A stretch of DNA of 64,000 nucleotides from Ramazzottius varieornatus (Eukaryota; Animalia; Tardigrada): assembly GCA_001949185.1 (NCBI GenBank), contig BDGG01000007.1:1-64000 (forward strand), given 5' to 3'. The notes below the pieces were generated by a model, which worked only from the letters and a program-made list of their open reading frames with translations, ran no database searches and was not told the DNA's origin. This document shows positions 26,428 through 59,600 of the stretch, piece by piece. The first letter of the stretch is position 1. Every line of letters starts with the position of its first letter. Position numbers and translations under genes: made by a program.

Positions 26428-27673
26428 ATGACAATGCCAGTATCTCGGTACTACAGTAGGAGCCTTGCCGAGGGCCGAAGCTTCAGTGTGTACAGTTCGG
26501 AAAAGTCTGAGAAGAGTGCTACCTCACCTCTTTGTCGACAAGCCTCCTTTGCATCCTCTTCGCGCCTCCTCTCCCCACAATTGTCCCACTGGAACGTTCT
26601 TTCATGTCGGTGGATCTCTCGGACGGGAAAGAATACTACTCATTATGATACGTTAGGCGTACAGTCCACCGCTTCTGCGAAGGTAAGGTGGGAAGGCAAG
26701 AAGCAGCACATCCAATTGACTAAATCAACAATCAAACCGGTGTTCGCAGCATGGTGTACACCAAATGAAAACAGCGATCAGACAGTGCTATTTGTTTGAT
26801 TGATGACCAGCCGGTCTACTGCTGCATCATCCGTCAGCTGTTTAATGGTGGGCGGTGTGGTGGTCTGAGCTGTTAACTGTCCAGCTCGCCATGGGTCAAG
26901 CTGCAGCACTGCCTTGGCTGACGAACGGTTACGTTTTGCAGGATATCAAGTCGGCCTATTACGAGCAGTCGAAGAAGTGGCATCCTGACTTGAACCCCAG
27001 TGTTGAAGCCTCGACGAAGTTCCGGGAAGTCTCCGAAGCCTATGAAACATTGGGAAGTGAGCGCAGTCGTAAGACTTACGACGAGAAGTTGGATGCCACT
27101 TCGTACAGTCGGTCAGGCTATGCTAGGCCGACCAGTACAACTTACCGTGACACCAACATGCCTGGCTACGATCCGAACGCTTCCGTGTTCAACCGCCGAA
27201 CAGCCCACCGGAGAGCTCCTCAAAGTGGCAGAGATCAGTACTGGGATTATGATGAATACTACAGGCAACATTACTCCTACCTCCGGGAAAGGCAGTACCG
27301 AGAAGCGCAGTGGAGACAGCATCAGGAAGAGTTCAGAAGTCAACAGATGGCGCGCGGCATGCATCAAATGTCGCGACGCGGGGAAAATACGAAACTCTTT
27401 ATATTTTTCTGCATGATTGCTACCATGTTGATGTTTCTCGATCTTGTAGATACTGAACCTAACCCTTATGCAATGGAGGCTATCAGCGAGAAGCGTAGGA
27501 AGGCAAGAGAAGAATATGTTTTAAGGGAACGAATGAGGCAAAGTGTAAATCAGAGTTTGGATGATATTTATGGGGCTACCAGTTTTACGGGACATAATGT
27601 CTCAAATAATCCTTATAGACCTAATGCAGTGACTCGCGTTGTCACGTCGGAACCTCCACCGACCACTTCGTGA
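26428..27673 (+). CDS. DnaJ (J-domain) co-chaperone, likely mitochondrial (DNAJC30-like); exons 26428-26682, 26942-27673
   Basis: THYDTLGV...AK|DIKSAYYEQSKKWHPDLNP...FREVSEAYETLG contains the HPD motif. Arg/Ser-rich presequence-like N-terminus and one C-terminal TM segment. Confidence 0.88.
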
Positions 27674-37086: not shown

Positions 37087-38148
37087 TCATCCAGATCGTA
37101 AGATGTAGACCCGATGGAAAGCACTGCGCAGTTCTGTCAAAGTAAGCACGAGCCATATGGGATCCAGAATGCTGATAAACTCGAATAGCATGGATCCTAT
37201 CGGATGGATACCGGGGACGTTGATGTTGAAGAGTAATAACGTGAAGTAGACCTGATCGGGTGCGAAACGAGCTAGTACACCTATTGTCATTAAGCAGAGC
37301 ACGATGAAGTTACGGTTGATTTTACGAAGCGAAACTTTGATGGCTGGGTTTGCCACAGGGCCCTCGACGTTGTTCGCGTCTTGTCCCCCAGTTTTTGCAA
37401 CCGTTCCTGCTTCGATTGGGCGAGTGGCTGTTTGTCGTGAAGTGATGTTCGTTTCAACCTTTGGCCTGACGCGGACAGCTGGCACTCTGAAAGCTTTCCA
37501 GCAGACCACTGGGAAGACCAGCAGGACTATGACGATTGGAAGGTTGAATATCAGCATTTGCATAATGAGCAGCCATTCGTACGGCGCATCCGTGGCGATG
37601 TTACTGCCCTTGATCTCGACCGGTGGTCGATAGACAAAAACATCCAGTAAAATGCCCGGAATCACACAGATATTGAGGTAGATCCACATGGACAGGCAAA
37701 CGCCGACGGCAAATTTGAGTTGGTGTTTCTGGAGGTAAGAGACTGGGAAGGTGACGGCCCAAAGTCGGTTCATTGCGATCAATGCGTGCGCATTACACAT
37801 GCCTCCACAAAAGACGTAACTGGTATACTGCGCCATGGTACATAACGAATTTCCAATCCACCATGTTGAGTACAGTTTGCCGACCACATCGAGCGGGTTG
37901 TGGAATATAACGGTTATGATGTTGGCTATGAAAAGATTGACAGCGTATACGGTGAAGGGCGTGAGCAGGGAAGGTTCGCGAGCGAACAGATAAAGGACTC
38001 CGCCGTTGGTCAGCAGGGGGCTAAACTGAATAAAGATATTAAATATTGTCCAGAAGTTCCAAGTTGCGACATCGGCTGCAGCATTGGTTCTGTTGGCAAT
38101 TTCATCCAGCCTGCCTGAGAAGTTAAAGACAGATCCGTTCGTGTCCAT
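37087..38148 (-). CDS. Intronless class A (rhodopsin-like) GPCR, 353 aa
   Basis: Seven hydrophobic segments, N-terminal glycosylation sites, TM3 Cys, MNRLWAV (DRY-like) and LDPIWL (NPxxY-like). Confidence 0.88.
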   Translation of the reverse strand: MDTNGSVFNFSGRLDEIANRTNAAADVATWNFWTIFNIFIQFSPLLTNGGVLYLFAREPSLLTPFTVYAVNLFIANIITVIFHNPLDVVGKLYSTWWIGNSLCTMAQYTSYVFCGGMCNAHALIAMNRLWAVTFPVSYLQKHQLKFAVGVCLSMWIYLNICVIPGILLDVFVYRPPVEIKGSNIATDAPYEWLLIMQMLIFNLPIVIVLLVFPVVCWKAFRVPAVRVRPKVETNITSRQTATRPIEAGTVAKTGGQDANNVEGPVANPAIKVSLRKINRNFIVLCLMTIGVLARFAPDQVYFTLLLFNINVPGIHPIGSMLFEFISILDPIWLVLTLTELRSAFHRVYILRSG

Positions 38149-47155: not shown

Positions 47156-48879
47156 TCAATGGCTCTTTTCAGGATCTTGACGACTGGAAATGAAGGTTGA
47201 CATCTCGTTGCTTTCGGACTGACTGGCTACACTCTCGGGCCTCTTCAACACCCGGTCACACATGGCTCTGGCAGCATCCCGATAATCCATGTTGAGCGCA
47301 AAGAAGATCAGCTGCAACAATAAACACAATAGACAGTGGGTGTGCTTGTCTGAGCGCGTCTTGCCGTCACTGCAGGCAGCCTCCTCGGCTACCGAAATAA
47401 CTTTCCGGAGACGCGTGGAGCAGCTCGATAGTGTGGGTGCGAGTTGACTCGTTCTGACTTCCTGAGCGGTTTTACTGCTTCCCGCTCATTTTACACCAAA
47501 TTTCGCATTGAAATTGGAAATATTATCCCATGCAGTTGTTCACAACAGAAAACTTAGGCCTGAGCAGACTCAATGTAAATTGCTGTTGATTTACTCAGCG
47601 AGCGTAAAGTTTTCTCAGAAGTTTTCAAAGCTGAGCTAAAGCGCCGGGGGTGTTTCAAAATAGTACGTGCCAGCACACGAGCTCTGCTTAATGATGCATG
47701 GAACATAATAGAACAAGATCCCGGTTCCACTCCCCGAGTCCCTTAAGCGAGAGGCACAAGCCTCTGTTTACCTAACGATGCAAATGTCATAGCTCACCGG
47801 ATTCGCCGCATAACCACACAGAAAGACCGTGCGGAGCCATAACTGCATGACAGGATCTTTCTTCAAGGCATCATTAAAGGCCGTGATCAATATCGGCAAT
47901 GGTAGTAAGCAAGCCAGATACCACAATGCCGACACAAACAACATCCGGGCGACGACAATGCGTCGCCGGAGCGTCTTCCGGTCCTGCTCGATACATGTGA
48001 CGTCTTGTCTTGATCGATGGATGGTCCGAATAAAAATGGTGAAATATAGGATAAATATGAGAGACAGTGGAATGTAGTTGCCGATCGCCGTGGCGATGGT
48101 CAGGGCAGACTGACTCTGCGCGCCTATCTCACAACGGTAGAACGGAGGTTTCGGCTGCGAGACGTTGTCGTCGGCGAAGAGCTGCGACGATGTCGCTACA
48201 ATCCCGATGAGCCAACTGAAAGAAACACAGCCAGGTCGTAAAACAGTCGTCAGATCCAGGTCTGGAAACCGACCAACTAGAACCAAGGTTCTATTCTAAC
48301 ACTTCGGCCGTGGTGGGCAAGTTCGTACGTATACGGCTGCTGTGAGCACTGTATCCTATTTCTTCCTTTGTATTCGTTAGTCCTATACCTTGTGACGATC
48401 ATGGCTCGAAGGAGGTTCTTTCGTATCCACCATTTGTATTTTAACGGATAGAGGACGGCCACGTATCGGTTGAATGCCAAGAAGACTGCGAGCCAGCTGT
48501 TGGCATGGATGGTCGTAATGTACAGAAGGAGGTATGTTGGGCAGTGAATGCCGGTATGGGTTGCTTTGTGCTGATGGAAGTTGATGAACATAGATACGGT
48601 CTGCAGGGGACTGCACAAGCCGCAGATGATGCATTCTTGAATGATGAGGTGGATAATCAAGATGGAGGAACCCGTTTGAAAGTCCTTTCGTTGGGCGATT
48701 ATACGGAGGAGGAGGAGGAAGAGGGTCGTGCTCGTTATGCAAATTAGCATGGACACCGCAAACCAGATCTCGAACCACAGTACGCCGTAAGGGGATAATT
48801 CAATTGAATCATCGATGTCATCAAGTTCAGTGGAATTGGGAGCAAAGCTCGATAGTTTGTCCGTAAAATAATCTTCCAT
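47156..48879 (-). CDS. Class A GPCR (exons 48389-48879, 47798-48215, 47156-47311)
   Basis: AFNRYVAVLYP, ACLLPLP in TM6, and ANP|LIFFALNMDYR in TM7/H8. Exons join in frame. Confidence 0.88.
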
Positions 48880-49849
48880 GTTTCCCCGCACCAGTATGGA
48901 CTGCGAAGTGACCATAAAGCAAGTAGGAAAAATCATTAATGATACGGATCAAGTACGATTTAATGGGCGATGCTTCGCCGTGGGACTTCCGGGGTGACAC
49001 GGGTGTCAAATATCGATGGGATGTTGGGTTGGAAATCGATAGGGGAAATTTCAATCTTGCTGCTCGCTGTGCAATCAGATGGAGGTAAGAGATAACAAGT
49101 GGGCGGATTGTACGCGTTGGATTTCCAGATGAAGTCCGAGGATGGATCGAAGTACTACTTGAGAAACAGTACATTGCCTTGAGATGACGACTGAGCTCAT
49201 CAGGAGGCGTGGAAGTCTTTGAAGCGCTCGGTCCGATCTGACGGGTGGTTCGCTTCCAATCTGAGGAGCCTCAGTTCCTCAAGTACAAAATGTTGGGAGT
49301 ATGATGTCACGTCTGACGTTGTCTCCAAACTCCGTCATTGTTGCGTCTTGGACAAGTTAAAATTGATAGAACTCCTGGGTAGAACATATGACTGTGTCCT
49401 CCGTCGGCTCGGTTTTGCTACAAAAACTTTTGCAGGACAAGTTATGCCAGTTTCACCTACAGTAATACTTAAGCAAAGCCATGTGTCTGCTGTTCAGAAC
49501 CGCGTTTTATTCCTGTCAATCATACGTCGGATGCTGGGAAGAATAAACATTTGATCAGGTGTACAGTCGATAGTCCTACCTTGCTTCCCTGCTGCCCCTT
49601 GCTCCTGCACAACTGGTGCTTCGAACGTATGCCAGCAGCAAAATTTTTTCTGCACGCAAAACTTTTCTGACATACTGTACAAAAAAAAATTCACAAGAAC
49701 TTTAGTCAAAGGCTCGGAACATTAAAACGCGCTCCAAACCGTGAAAGCGGTTGTTGTGAATCAGACAGCTTGATCCGAAAACCTGTATACAGCGCGAGTA
49801 CATCCCTGCTCTCCTTTCTGCTGACATAAAAAACTCGGGCGCTACCTTT

Positions 49850-54126: not shown

Positions 54127-56223
54127 CCATAACTTTCTGTTCCCACAATAAATTCAGTTTCGACAGTCGTAGCTCTTCGTTCCTTCCATGATGTTGGTTC
54201 ATCATTAGATCGAACACTTAATCCAGCACTGTTACGCACATGAGAGAACAAACGAAAACCGCTCATTGAGTCTGACTCCCCACTTGGCAGTATATCAGCT
54301 AAGGGTATCAAGTGCGTGGTTGACAGATTCGGTTTCGCTAGCTGGAATATTAAATCATGATCGTAGGTGTACTGCACTTCTCTTACAGCCATCCTTTTAA
54401 TGACTATCAAGCGCGTTTCTTAGTTTTTGAGAAAGATTCGGCCCCTGGCCTTTGAGTTTACTGCTAAAGTACTGCCAGATCTCAGCTAATTATCGGTCAG
54501 ACGTTGGCGAGTGCACTATTGCAATACTTGTGGTGTGCGAAAGCAATCTGTTCAACCACCCAGCAGGCGTCATTCGGTAGGCTGACTGCATCTTGCACGT
54601 GTACGGTATGAGGTTGCTGCAAATTTTAGCAGTAAACTACGGAACGCCGACCACACTCGCTGTCAGTAACCAGTGTTCGACCAGTGTATGACCAGTGTCT
54701 AGCGAATCTTGCTGACATATTTCAACGGCGCTTTCGAAAGATGACCACAGTACGACAAGTTCTCGTTGACTGTGTTTCTGCTTAACTATCTGGATGGACT
54801 TTCCATGGACTGAAACACAACCTTTACAGATCCACCACAGGTTCTCCCTAAATTCCGATTTTTATATGGGATCTTCAGCTGCTACCTGGGTGCCTGCTGC
54901 AACCCGGTGAGTCCAGTCTGTCGGCCATCCTTCGTACCAACGCAGGTCACTTTTACGGATTGGGACGAACCATGCGCACAGTACATCTTCTCATTCGAGC
55001 TAACTTACATGCTGCTTCTTTTGCCAGAGTTCCGAATCATCAGAAACGGCCCATCGAAACCCGTAAACGGCGGACGCGGCTGCTTTTGCTGCGAGAAACG
55101 CATATCGAACGATCCATCACCTGCGCATTGTGTTGTTCTGTCGCTGTCACAACTACATTTTGGATATACATTGCCGAATATTACGCTCGTGAAAAAACTT
55201 GGAGTAAACAATCGCGACTACTGGTTTTCATCTTCACTGAGCCATGATTTTGCCATATCGTGCGCTGTTTGTCAAGAGTTTCCTTTGGTATTTTGTAAAA
55301 AGCGCCGATGATGTCAAGAATGCACTCGAAGAGGAATTTTTTTGCGGAAAGCGCTTCCGTGCATCGGCCATACAAAAAAGGGGATAAAGTTCTGCAGCAC
55401 AGGACTACAACCATGAGCGGGACGTACGAGCGCGTGGAAGACTTCGAAGGAAATGAAAACACCGAGCACCACATAAAAAGTAGGTCTCAACGATTTCGAA
55501 ACGATTTGCAAACAAGAAGGTTGAGAAACAGCGGGAACTGTGGCCATGCTTTCTAAAACACGATTTCTCATCAAATTGTCGATAACGAGAGCTGGTTTAC
55601 AGAGTGGACGCTGGAGTGTCAAGCAGCCTCTGTCGGATGAGTGCAAGCGAAGCGGATGTTGTACCGATGAATACCAGTATGCACACGAACTGGCAAACGG
55701 GCGAACATGTAACTTCATGTTGGAACTACAGTGTTTTCACACTTTCGGAAAACACGTGCAGAGTTTTCGGAACAACGTCACTGCAGCCAGATCCTTTGTT
55801 AGCGCGTTGGAGTACTGTGACATACGCGTGGTATACGTGGCTTACTACTGATTTATTCAGTCATGAAAAGCGGTGTAGGATCTTGCTTGAAGTTTCATTC
55901 GCATCATGATGCAAGGGTATCAGATTCAGAAGTGCGCCCGCGAGGAATCGTCCATGCATGCAGCGCTTGGCGATACAGCGGTTGGTTAAAGATAGCACAC
56001 TGCAGTGACTGCGCTGTGAGCACAGTACGAGACAGTCTTGCGAGAACACTTACGCTTCCACCATTTATGGCCAGGTTTGCTTAGGTTGGCTTGCTCTTCA
56101 TTCACAATCCCAACTTCCGAGCTCTTTCACAACTTCCCACAGCATCTGATCTTTTCCTGACAGTTCCGCACCGGTCATTGAAACGATTGTTTTCTTGTCC
56201 ACAAGTTAGAACGCACTAGGATC

Positions 56224-58423
56224 ATGCAGGCAGTCGCGGATCAAAGCAACGTCTTCGTCAACCTGAAGAAAGTTAAATCGAACGATCCAGATGGAGATCC
56301 TGGCATTCTCGTCTCCATCCCGGGAGAACTGTATTCACCCATTGAAGAACTGGAACAGAGAAACCTCAAGTCATATTGCTCGAACGATCGAAACTACTTG
56401 CCAGGAATGAAGCTGGCTGGTATGACCGTCTACATGTACCACGTCGACAGCCGCTCGTTCAGAGAACTGACAGTGGAGGAGCATCGTCTTCTACTGTGCA
56501 TCAAGACTTTCCCGCACCGTATTGACTTGATTAGGAACGAAGCGAAATTCCTCAGCATCAAGAACTTGACTGTTGGTAAGTCTTCAAAACTTTGAACTGG
56601 AATTTTCATCCTGTCCCTAATCATCTTGCGCTTGACCTGTCCCTATACACTTCTCCCTGCGAGATGTGACAATTGCTCCTCCTGCGACTGGACAGCAATT
56701 CTGCGCGGGCTTGCTCGCCATACACCGCGCAGCACGATCAGCTGATCGACGCCCGCTTCTGGCTACACTTGATCAAGTAACCAAGCGGATGTCCGATCAG
56801 CTGATGCCTAATTGTTTTCATGCAAACGGCATGACGAGCAATTCCGTGGACATATGAACTGTCCGGAACTACGACTGCGACTGTGTATATTTGAGCACTA
56901 GGCAAAGCTTTCAGTACGGCGTTGCCATTATATGCAGCGACGTTGAGACAGAAAAGTAGCTGTTCTGTAAACACTCACGTCAGTGGATCCCTTTGATCTA
57001 GACGACTATTTTGATTGGTTGATACAATTTGCTATTCTATCGATGCCCGCTCTATACTGTGTAATTTAGCCACGCCCAGTGCTCATTTATTCAGAGCAAG
57101 ATGTCAAGTTCGGTCCTACGCAAGATGGCGCTGTACCGAGGTGGCGGCAAACGTGTACAGTACATTGAAGAATACCTCTGTGCTCTAGGGGATCGGGTCA
57201 AGGCTTACTGCAGCCGCGATTGGCGATTCGGACGACTTGGCTACAAGGGAGCCATTCCGCAGAACAACAACGATCTTGAATTTAGCGAAGACGGCTCGGG
57301 AACCTGGTTCGGGGTGGAACTTCTCGGAGAGTCCGCCGGACGAGGAAAATGTGATGGGACCGTCTTTGGAATCCGACTGTTCCATTGCAATCCCGACTGT
57401 GGTGTGTTCGTCACTGCCGCATGCATTCGTCCCGACAACACTATCCCAGCGCTTCAGGAAAATGGCGGAGATAACGGAATTGAGGTCGTACAGTCTGCAG
57501 CACCGGTTGCCAACACGGTAAAGACGCAGTTCAAACGATAAAACTACGGTATTGCTAATTCTGATTTCGTTTCTCAGATGCCGGGTGCGGACAACGCCGT
57601 GGAAATGTTCGTCATCCCGGCCGACTTGTTGAATCGTTACGGCAAGCGACCTCACGAAGACCACATCAGGGCTGCCAAGCTAATCCCAGCAATTTCCTGG
57701 GTCCAGTTCAACGAGCGCAACAACAAGTGTTTGATCGAAGGCGGCAATGTCGACGTCTGTCGTTATGCGCGCACGACGATCGAGCTTTTCCAAGAGCTGT
57801 ACCGTCTACCCAACCAACTATTGGCCAAGTTCACCGAGAAGAACTACAAGAAGATCAATGGCATTCGCAAGGTGTCCAACGCAGTCATCACTGAAGATGA
57901 GAAGAACGAGTTCTACACTTTGTTCCGCGTAGTTGGCTTGGCCAGTGAAGTACGTCGTGGAATGGAGGCGTTTGAAGCTGAAGTGGCCAAACTGGGCGCT
58001 ACTCAACAATCAGCAACAGGAGCTTCTACTCCCGCGCCGTCCACAACAGGAACCGGGACCGGTAACAGCGGGAGCGGAAATGGCGGGAAAAAGCGCAAGA
58101 ATCGTGGCAACACCGGCTCGAATCCCGGTCTGTCGGACCAAGTTCAGGCAGGAGTGGAAAGTATGGAGGTGGACAACGTCGATATTAACGTAGAGGGAAG
58201 ACTTCCCCCGGATCCAGAGAGACTGGATCTGCCACCTATTGTGGGAGGAGATACCACCAAGGAATGCATAATTTGTATGGTGGAGGTGCCGGTAATGGTA
58301 CTCTACAAGTGCGGACATATGCAGACTTGTCGAGGATGCGCGGAGAAACTGTTCTATAGCATGAAAAAAGAATGCCCGACTTGCCGTAAGCCCATCGAGG
58401 ATATCATCCGTGTTTTCGAATAA
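56224..58423 (+). CDS. Chimeric CYLD-like N-terminus/CAP-Gly + tandem KH-like + RING E3 ligase (exons 56224-56575, 57189-57517, 57578-58423; 508 aa)
   Basis: LLLCIKTFPHRIDLIRN...LTVG|DRV...GTWFGVELLGESAGRGKCDGTVFGIRLFHCNPDCGVFV (CAP-Gly). KH-like pair in exon 3. C-terminal CIIC...VLYKCGHMQTCRGC...CPTCRKPIEDIIRVF (RING-HC). Splices are in frame (1527 nt). Confidence 0.85.
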
Positions 58424-58823
58424 AAGCTAGGAAACATGTAAAGCAGAAAAAGTTTGTGCTATGCATCTACAAAATATTCGCTGTGGACGCTTTTTCAATT
58501 TTACCCTTGGTATCGATGGTCGGTTTCAATCATAGTGCGTTGTCTTCTTCAATCCTGAATACGCTTCACGCCTTGTATATTCTCGTCTTTTCTTCACTAC
58601 TGTTTGGATTTCATACTTACGTTTCATCGTTCCGTTCGTAAATTTGGTCTGTGCTGCATACTTGAAATACTCTACACATTAATATGTCCATAACCCAAAA
58701 TTCGTCATTTTATTACACAAGGCACTTTACTGTAACCGGAAACAAACCCGAAAGTAGAAATTTACAAGGGATAATGTGGTCGATTAACTTGATTAGAGAC
58801 CTCTCAATACAGAGTGGCCCAGT

Positions 58824-59600
58824 TTATCGGAGGAACAGCGCATTCTTCTCCGGTTGAACAACAGGTCGTACAATAACAGGATAGAACGATGCCGACATTC
58901 TTCTTGTCAATATAAACAAGACCACGGTCCCGTGGATCATACTGACCAAGCTAGCGATACCCGTCATAAGTGTTACCCAAAAGCAACAAACGATCGCCAT
59001 ATCGGTACTCGTTGACCGTGGCTGTATAACCCGGATCGTCGCTTGGTACAGGCAGATGGACTGAAAGATTACGAACAGCACGTTGCCGATAACTTCGATT
59101 ACGCTGGTGGTCAGCGTGAACAGAACCTTGGACCGCGAAATGTCGGCACCGTGGAAGTCCGAGGCTCCGCTGAGCGTAATGGCGGATGCATGTCGTGGGT
59201 TGAGAGCATGGTGGACATCAATGACCACAGTGGTTTGGGACACCATCGTCCGCATCTTGCCCCAAAAGCCGATCAAAGGAAGGGCGGCAACCAGAACGAA
59301 AATGATGTTGGTTAGTCCATAGTATTCGACGAGGTTATGGTTGACTGCATCAGGTGATGTATAAAGTACGACGAATACTATCGATAGCACAGAAGAACAA
59401 ATCCTTAGTACACCCTATCAGATAGTTTCAATGTCCTGAAAGGAAGACTTACGGGTGGTACCGACACTGAGCAATATTACGGCGAGAACAACACGATGGA
59501 TGTTCGTGCTCGAGAGCTGACCGAGATGAACGGTGTGCGGGGTGGTTTTGACGGTGTTCCGGTATCCGATTTCGTATTCTTCCCGACTGAGAAAGTCCAT
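58824..59600 (-). CDS. Multi-pass membrane protein of unknown family (two exons, ~59481-59600 and 58824-59414)
   Basis: About four hydrophobic segments. Phase-0 acceptor at 59415. Donor is tentative. Confidence 0.55.

Follow-up and report, generated by a model that had tools for sequence, protein, structure and literature searches.

The locus RvY_11877 of the tardigrade Ramazzottius varieornatus raises the question whether one intact gene really joins pieces of a deubiquitinase, of an RNA-binding protein and of a ubiquitin ligase, and if so what kind of protein results. The gene lies in the first 64 kb of scaffold C7 of the R. varieornatus assembly, and this whole stretch is called the window in what follows. 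RvY_11877 is confirmed as an intact, transcribed gene. Its product is probably an E3 ubiquitin ligase of the RING type, assembled from modules through domain shuffling, with a CYLD-type head, two KH domains devoid of their GxxG loops that would serve as a scaffold, and a RING finger that is probably dimeric.

The gene, its transcripts and its protein

RvY_11877 is encoded on the forward strand by three exons (56224-56575, 57189-57517 and 57578-58423) and its product has 508 amino acids. The frame was checked arithmetically and, together with the exon borders and the length, agrees with the open frame proposed in a first-pass annotation made from the DNA letters. Exon 1 starts with the ATG at 56224, which is also the start of the deposited protein, and codes for residues 1-117 plus one base, without any known domain. 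Exon 2 supplies residues 118-227, and exon 3 residues 228-508 and the stop codon. They are separated by intron 1 (56576-57188, 613 nt, phase 1) and intron 2 (57518-57577, 60 nt, phase 0), both beginning with GT and ending with AG.

The protein is already public as GAV01116.1 (UniProt A0A1D1VJZ3, P0151 in our searches), a 508-residue entry from R. varieornatus labelled "hypothetical protein RvY_11877" and, in UniProt, "RING-type domain-containing protein". It was reached by an exhaustive HMMER search with exon 3, which led to a 95%-identical open reading frame (ORF), P0001, and through the cluster of P0001 to the deposited entry. When the exons were compared singly, each translation was 100% identical to it (residues 119-227 in the case of exon 2, residues 228-508 in that of exon 3).

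Four public runs, each from a different study, supplied contigs that were aligned to positions 55900-58900. That these runs are of RNA was only guessed, and the spliced joints themselves are the evidence of transcripts. Two runs contained one contig each (1892 and 1845 nt) that spans 56063..56574, 57188..57516 and 57577..58600, skipping 613 and 60 nt exactly. In a third run, identical to the assembly, short contigs cross both joints, with just 23 letters to one side of the second joint. Since the contigs of these three runs lack the introns exactly at the GT..AG joints, RvY_11877 is spliced and transcribed, and the junctions 56575/57189 and 57517/57578 named in the first-pass annotation are found in transcripts, both of them on single contigs of about 1.9 kb. 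The transcript contigs start at 56043, 56063 and 56075, which gives a 5' untranslated region of at least 56043-56223, and the full-length contigs stop at 58589 and 58600, which places the approximate end of the 3' untranslated region (58424-58600). A search of 55900-58900 against Rfam returned no match.

Origins of the head and of the KH tandem

The CAP-Gly domain occupies 57215-57418 in exon 2 (residues 127-194) and is of the type of the first CAP-Gly domain of CYLD. Pfam recognised it as PF01302 (CAP_GLY; E 2.1e-12, 47.2 bits against a cut-off of 26.5), and this was the single CAP_GLY match in the whole protein. Among PDB sequences the best match of exon 2 was CAP-Gly 1 of CYLD (1whl, E 3.4e-9), over a region that takes in the CYLD-specific end of the domain; the next was a domain of CLIPR-59 (1whh, E 1.5e-6), the E-value of 1whl being about 400 times better. 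A profile built from six paralogous CAP-Gly exons of this genome also placed 1whl first (6.2e-10), and CYLD chains made up four of its top five matches. Its best match in the genome outside the family was a CAP-Gly domain on scaffold C2, which itself matches 1whl best. The loop of the domain in RvY_11877 reads GRGKCDG and not GKNDG, the aligned chain of CYLD CAP-Gly 1 having GRGQGFTDG. A complex prediction between residues 115-205 and the C-terminal tail of an alpha-tubulin of the same genome gave a score of 0.03, which counts neither for nor against binding.

Scaffold C2 carries the canonical CYLD of R. varieornatus (about 4246.1-4250.0k, minus strand; L058:2598-6448), with its N-terminal region, its CAP-Gly domains and a ubiquitin-specific protease (USP) domain with B-box, the USP part of which matches 2vhf with an E-value of 1.6e-38 in the PDB search. 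The idea that the genome is without a canonical CYLD, suggested by the lack of a PF00443 match near any CAP-Gly match, was rejected on the reading of this locus and on the 2vhf match. The six-frame search with PF00443 overlooked the gene, and in this genome the lack of a UCH match does not equal the lack of a USP domain.

BLASTP aligned residues 89-199 of the RvY_11877 protein with residues 91-190 of this tardigrade CYLD (E 6e-8). The alignment covers about 30 residues preceding the CAP-Gly domain, including a "LLLCIKTF..." stretch, and residues 89-117 of exon 1 fall within it. The head (about residues 89-199) is thereby shown to be paralogous to the helix before CAP-Gly 1 and to CAP-Gly 1 itself in the CYLD of the same tardigrade. 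The first-pass annotation had likened exons 1 and 2 to the N-terminus and first CAP-Gly domain of CYLD, with the residues ahead of the CAP-Gly domain matched by eye to the human protein; this stands for exon 2 and for residues 89-199, and the first 88 or so residues could not be tied to CYLD. Exon 1 had no match in Pfam or in the PDB, its AlphaFold2 (AF2) model from five sequences reached a predicted local distance difference test (pLDDT) score of 50, and the N-terminal profile of the family compared with the tardigrade CYLD by hhalign gave a non-significant E-value of 0.45. Homologous N-terminal exons occur in four paralogues and have a "LYGPL..EL"-type motif in common with exon 1.

The first part of exon 3 encodes two KH domains, at 57596-57781 (residues 234-295, in the order beta-alpha-alpha-beta-beta-alpha) and at 57785-58015 (residues 297-373), the second of which is followed by a long C-terminal helix. 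A plain phmmer search of PDB sequences with exon 3 matched the crystal chain of FMR1 KH1-KH2 (2qnd) with an E-value of 4.9e-5 over 97 residues, as well as an FXR1 KH1 chain; no MEX3 KH chain was matched in this search. A profile of the Ramazzottius paralogues improved the match to 2qnd to 5.1e-7 and extended it over both KH domains. The AF2 model, made from an alignment of family members, shows residues 230-375 at a pLDDT of about 95 as two type-I KH units and then the long helix. When this model was compared with the PDB by Foldseek, 2qnd came first (E 1.6e-9, target template modelling (TM) score 0.73, root mean square deviation (rmsd) 3.3, 143 columns), whereas the other KH tandems (IMP, PCBP2, Nova, FBP and KSRP) had TM scores of at most 0.42 and rmsd above 11. 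Because of this difference, not only the fold but also the placement of the two domains relative to each other is FMR1-like. The structural neighbours of the ESM Atlas model of this protein were FMR1/FXR clusters (residues ~213-488) and CYLD clusters, at low TM scores that make them a lead only.

A hidden Markov model (HMM) of 21 family modules, built without FMR1, found the tardigrade FMR1 with 36 bits (E 5e-9 in a search space of 20,000 proteins). Among the 29 KH_1 matches of the genome it ranked FMR1 first, then a vigilin-like gene with 24 bits and the two MEX3-like genes with 20 and 8, which match over a single KH domain. The relationship is visible to profiles only: BLASTP of the window's KH tandem against the tardigrade FMR1 gave no match. 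The FMR1 gene itself was found with PF17904 (KH_9) on scaffold C9 (about 1392.6-1393.3k, minus strand; L019:472-1569); both of its GxxG loops are intact (GAGG in one, GKSG in the other) and its long tail is rich in Gly and Arg. This gene is likely to represent the donor lineage of the family's KH tandem.

In RvY_11877 both loops are gone. In the alignment to 2qnd, GTHG of KH1 is replaced by GKRP(H), with a one-residue insertion (57641-57652), and GKNG of KH2 by EKNY (57836-57847), and in the AF2 model the replaced loops connect helix 1 to helix 2 in each domain. Neither domain was recognised by the KH_1 model of Pfam. The middle of the protein is thus shown to be a KH1-KH2 tandem of the FMR1 type, in which the fold and the placement of the two domains are retained and both GxxG loops are lost. 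The FMR1 likeness and the loss of both loops, first noticed by eye, were thus upheld by the sequence, profile and structure searches, and the AlphaFold and Foldseek comparison showed that the region does fold as KH.

The linker, the RING and the tardigrade family

The KH tandem is followed by a low-complexity linker rich in Ser, Thr and Gly (58016-58258; AF2 pLDDT below 50), which contains the basic patch KKRKNR (58088-58105, residues 398-403). A K/R-rich patch is present at this position in every paralogue. The chain ends in a RING finger (58259-58420) that matches PF13920 (zf-C3HC4_3) over residues 455-502 with an E-value of 9.3e-14, above the Pfam cut-off. All eight zinc ligands of the C3HC4 type, from C457 to C496 (58265-58384), were found by a regular expression with the spacing C-x2-C-x11-C-x-H-x3-C-x2-C-x11-C-x2-C. 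The PDB matches of the RING were MDM2 (2.1e-5), MGRN1 (7.2e-5), MEX3C (5zi6, 2.5e-4) and cIAP2 (3.6e-4). The Neuralized/MEX3 type assigned to it in the first-pass annotation is correct at the level of the Pfam family, to which MEX3, Neuralized, MDM2 and the IAPs belong. With Neuralized, RvY_11877 has only this RING family in common, and no match to the Neuralized homology repeat (NHR) was found by Pfam. An Arg stands immediately after the last RING Cys and the chain ends in ..RVFE; a "C-P-x-C-R" motif and a hydrophobic or aromatic C-terminal tail are common to the paralogues and to the Hypsibius relatives. The N-terminal region, CAP-Gly domain, KH tandem, linker and RING account for the whole of RvY_11877.

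This arrangement is not unique to the window. Elsewhere in the genome CAP-Gly and RING matches pair on the same strand, 1-1.5 kb apart, and six-frame reading combined with profile searches revealed the same order in the paralogues: an N-terminal exon, CAP-Gly, KH tandem, K/R-rich linker and RING. At least four further loci with CAP-Gly, KH tandem and RING exist in R. varieornatus, in addition to decayed relics. The paralogue on scaffold C3 (about 3170.4-3171.8k) is apparently intact over the parts read, and the one on C6 (about 1580.9-1582.7k) is interrupted by an assembly gap. On C1, the paralogue at about 390.9-392.5k has an in-frame TAG in KH1 (L014:3576-3578, about 391.6k) and that at about 891.0-892.2k has a one-base frameshift at a GGGG run in the KH tandem (L013 ~7410, about 891.4k); these two defects may mark pseudogenes or assembly errors. 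The relics are found on C6 (about 1556.7-1558.2k, L017, with degenerate zinc ligands), C15 (about 23.7k, degenerate, the CAP-Gly having two stops), C16 (about 1118k, degenerate), C1 (about 2161k, L060:3234-3632, degenerate, with a short KH fragment) and C13 (about 1612.6k, L003:1447-1677, a lone RING exon). Taken together they indicate a birth-and-death turnover of the family. Two further loci, on C1 (about 1340.7-1342.5k) and on C4 (about 4379.5-4381.8k), have two KH_1 matches followed by a RING on the same strand; they are probably MEX3 orthologues and stand outside the CAP-Gly family.

In Hypsibius exemplaris five deposited hypothetical proteins have a KH tandem and a RING, and none of the five returned has a CAP-Gly head. 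Two of them have multiplied the tandem: P0002 (OQV12127.1) contains three full KH tandems and half a module, and P0004 (OQV19701.1) two full tandems and partial modules. Their N-terminal region resembles the N-terminal oligonucleotide/oligosaccharide-binding (OB) fold of RPA70, the Rep-A_N match in P0004 (20.7 bits) being under the cut-off of 26.7. A long "PSSGNP.TT" tandem repeat is a further feature of P0004, which lies with P0097 on one contig, four locus tags apart. An ENA protein, P0003, has CAP-Gly, KH tandem and RING and looks orthologous to the gene at 891k of C1. The exhaustive search covered 1.84 billion representatives, of which only three proteins passed an E-value of 1e-10; the matches bearing a KH tandem came from Ramazzottius, Hypsibius or unnamed ENA records only, and no relative could be assigned outside the tardigrades. 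A metagenome scan with P0003 gave one match, to the RING only. The maximum-likelihood tree of 15 KH-tandem modules was unresolved, with long branches, and gives no order of events. RvY_11877 is a member of a small, fast-changing birth-and-death family that combines a head, a KH tandem, a basic linker and a RING and has so far been seen in tardigrades only. The first-pass annotation knew of no described protein of this architecture. Literature searches found no paper on RvY_11877 or on its combination of domains; the gene is nevertheless already deposited, as an uncharacterised protein, and belongs to a tardigrade multigene family instead of being a unique chimera.

Over 56063-58600 the two full-length contigs (runs X1 and X4) depart from the window by about 1.5%, and so derive from another strain or a close relative. 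Among the 19 coding differences listed between window and contigs, 11 are synonymous and 8 non-synonymous. Between RvY_11877 and the 95%-identical P0001 the residues changed are 3 of 148 in the KH region, 8 of 78 in the linker and 3 of 55 in the RING. The linker is therefore the part changing fastest between strains and the KH tandem the slowest, about five times more conserved than the linker. The synonymous excess and the slow change of the KH tandem, in what is a small sample, point to purifying selection acting most strongly on the tandem. P0001, a Logan ORF, differs at 5% of residues, and the two transcript contigs, which bear the same organism label, by the 1.5% given above; the name R. 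varieornatus therefore covers at least two strains or cryptic species.

A few other features were recorded in the window. Intron 1 contains a dispersed repeat of about 115 bp (~56690-56805), with at least 40 genomic copies of 79-90% identity, which looks like a miniature inverted-repeat transposable element because it partly matches its own opposite strand. This repeat explains the deep contigs of 31-36 nt at 56713-56755 in all four runs. Two rhodopsin-family G protein-coupled receptor open frames lie on the minus strand (37087-38148, 7tm_1 E 1.6e-17, and 48277-48936, 7tm_1 E 4.1e-10) and a DnaJ-domain open frame on the plus strand (26855-27673, E 1.5e-14).

Proposed function and comparison with known systems

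In the ligase that we consider RvY_11877 probably to be, the RING would recruit a ubiquitin-loaded E2 and would probably act as a dimer. A dimer is suggested by two features shared with the dimeric RINGs of the MDM2/IAP/RNF4 type, the Arg that immediately follows the last zinc ligand and an aromatic residue two positions from the C-terminal end. Work on RNF4, cIAP/BIRC7 and MDM2 has established this Arg "linchpin" and the aromatic residue of the tail as marks of active dimeric RINGs, where one protomer uses its tail to grip the ubiquitin carried by the E2 on its partner. The CYLD-type CAP-Gly head could take the ligase to the acidic-aromatic C-terminal tails of microtubule proteins or to CYLD-type partners, and would select its location or substrate. 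The degenerate KH tandem would be mainly a rigid scaffold or a protein-binding module and not a classical RNA binder, and the basic patch of the linker could be a nuclear localisation signal or make non-specific contacts with nucleic acid. The idea of the first-pass annotation that the targeting module of CYLD has been joined to an E3 ligase is in agreement with these results, as each of its domain calls held when tested; its further suggestions, that the protein antagonises CYLD or provides a link to ribonucleoprotein (RNP) granules, are speculation.

Some points weigh against the proposal of a CYLD-headed ligase. Ligase activity, dimerisation and the ligands of the CAP-Gly and KH domains are properties that we infer. 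The classical GKNDG motif is absent from the CAP-Gly domain, so that binding of EEY/F tails is uncertain. No fold could be assigned to the first 88 residues by Pfam, PDB or AF2 comparison, and in the full-length AF2 model the CAP-Gly domain, the RING and the N-terminus have low confidence, the alignment being thin there. Moreover, the family is partly decaying, and relaxed selection is compatible with the small strain sample.

The alternative that survives best is that of a MEX3-like E3 binding RNA or single-stranded DNA, in which the KH tandem would hold nucleic acid through its basic G-K-R-P loop and the KKRK patch, the RING would modify RNP proteins and the CAP-Gly domain would tether the complex to microtubules. 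It is kept alive by the conservation of the KH tandem, the part most preserved between strains, and by its FMR1 fold and tandem geometry, retained at high confidence. The loop of KH1 is basic and retains its first Gly, all family members have a K/R-rich patch after KH2, and the nearest feature-based Atlas clusters of exon 3 are, at low scores, of KH plus RING (MEX3-like) composition. On the other hand, mutation of GxxG abolishes nucleic-acid binding by KH domains, and here both loops have been replaced, that of KH1 with an insertion and that of KH2 by a degenerate sequence that varies across the family. The failure of the Pfam KH_1 model to recognise either domain also argues against it. We regard this alternative as possible, although rather unlikely.

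It is improbable that RvY_11877 is a lineage-specific gene drifting to loss and transcribed without selected function, like several of its paralogues. The family does offer examples of apparent decay of this kind, in the in-frame TAG and the G-run frameshift of the two C1 genes (391k and 891k), in the stops or degenerate zinc ligands at C6:1557k, C15:23.7k, C16:1118k and C1:2161k and in the lone RING exon at C13:1612.6k, and the Hypsibius proteins returned include no CAP-Gly-headed orthologue. RvY_11877 has nevertheless kept 508 open codons and all eight zinc ligands, is spliced and present in the transcript assemblies of four studies, and shows the synonymous excess and the five-fold conservation of the KH tandem over the linker described above. 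That the three exons belong to separate transcripts, or that the model is mis-joined, can be dismissed, as nothing was found in its favour, single contigs of 1.85-1.89 kb from two runs carry all three exons with exact GT..AG joints that recur in a third run, and the deposited gene model is identical.

The CYLD-headed ligase can also be placed in a wider and more doubtful scheme. The family could be a private, fast-turnover E3 toolkit of tardigrades, in which a fixed core (the FMR1-derived KH tandem, the basic linker and a dimeric RING) would be joined to exchangeable heads that bind peptides. In Ramazzottius the head would be a CAP-Gly domain derived from CYLD; in Hypsibius it would be an OB fold similar to RPA70N, accompanied by as many as four or five KH tandems. 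RvY_11877 would then ubiquitinate the substrates of CYLD, and the RPA70N-headed members would act at sites of DNA damage. We find this scheme unlikely as a whole; were it true, the family would bear on tardigrade stress tolerance.

Many RING ligases have modular targeting domains. What is new here is a lineage-restricted combination of domains on a modular RING E3 for which both donor genes can be named, the gene itself being public as an uncharacterised protein. A deubiquitinase targeting head, an FMR1-type KH tandem without GxxG loops and a RING were not described together in the sources searched. As R. varieornatus still has both donors, CYLD on scaffold C2 and FMR1 on scaffold C9, this is a clean natural case of domain shuffling, and RvY_11877 makes it possible to ask which role a KH tandem plays after losing its GxxG loops. 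With its heads swapped between genera and, as far as seen, no members outside the tardigrades, the family is also a reasonable candidate for lineage-specific regulation.

Among known systems, MDM2/MDMX, cIAP/XIAP and RNF4 resemble RvY_11877 in having the RING at the extreme C-terminus, its last Cys followed by Arg, and an aromatic residue among the final three of the chain, and MDM2 RINGs are the best PDB sequence matches of its RING. Everything upstream of the RING is different, and dimerisation is here a prediction. MEX3 has the same order of KH, KH, linker and RING and a RING of the same Pfam family, PF13920. However, the KH domains of RvY_11877 are FMR1-like (36 bits for FMR1 in the family profile against 20 and 8 for the MEX3-like genes), whereas MEX3 has intact GxxG loops and no CAP-Gly domain.

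With FMR1, FXR1 and FXR2 the protein shares the KH1-KH2 fold, the relative orientation of the two domains (TM 0.73 to 2qnd) and detectable sequence homology. The Agenet/Tudor domains, KH0, RGG box and FXMRP1 C-terminal core of these proteins are all absent from it: Pfam found no match to Agenet, Tudor_FRX1, KH_9 or FXMRP1_C_core and no RGG box, KH_9 matching only the true FMR1 on C9. It also differs from FMR1 in lacking the long variable loop of KH2 and in the replacement of both GxxG loops. With CYLD it has in common a CAP-Gly domain of the CAP-Gly-1 type, with the longer G-R-G-x-x-x-D-G loop and the "..F.C..DCGVFV" end, as well as the 30 or so residues that precede this domain in the tardigrade CYLD. 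CYLD has three CAP-Gly domains, a USP domain and an inserted B-box, whereas RvY_11877 has one CAP-Gly domain and neither of the others, as no exon gave a UCH/USP match in Pfam. In place of a deubiquitinase, RvY_11877 bears the RING of a putative ubiquitin ligase, which would work in the opposite enzymatic direction.

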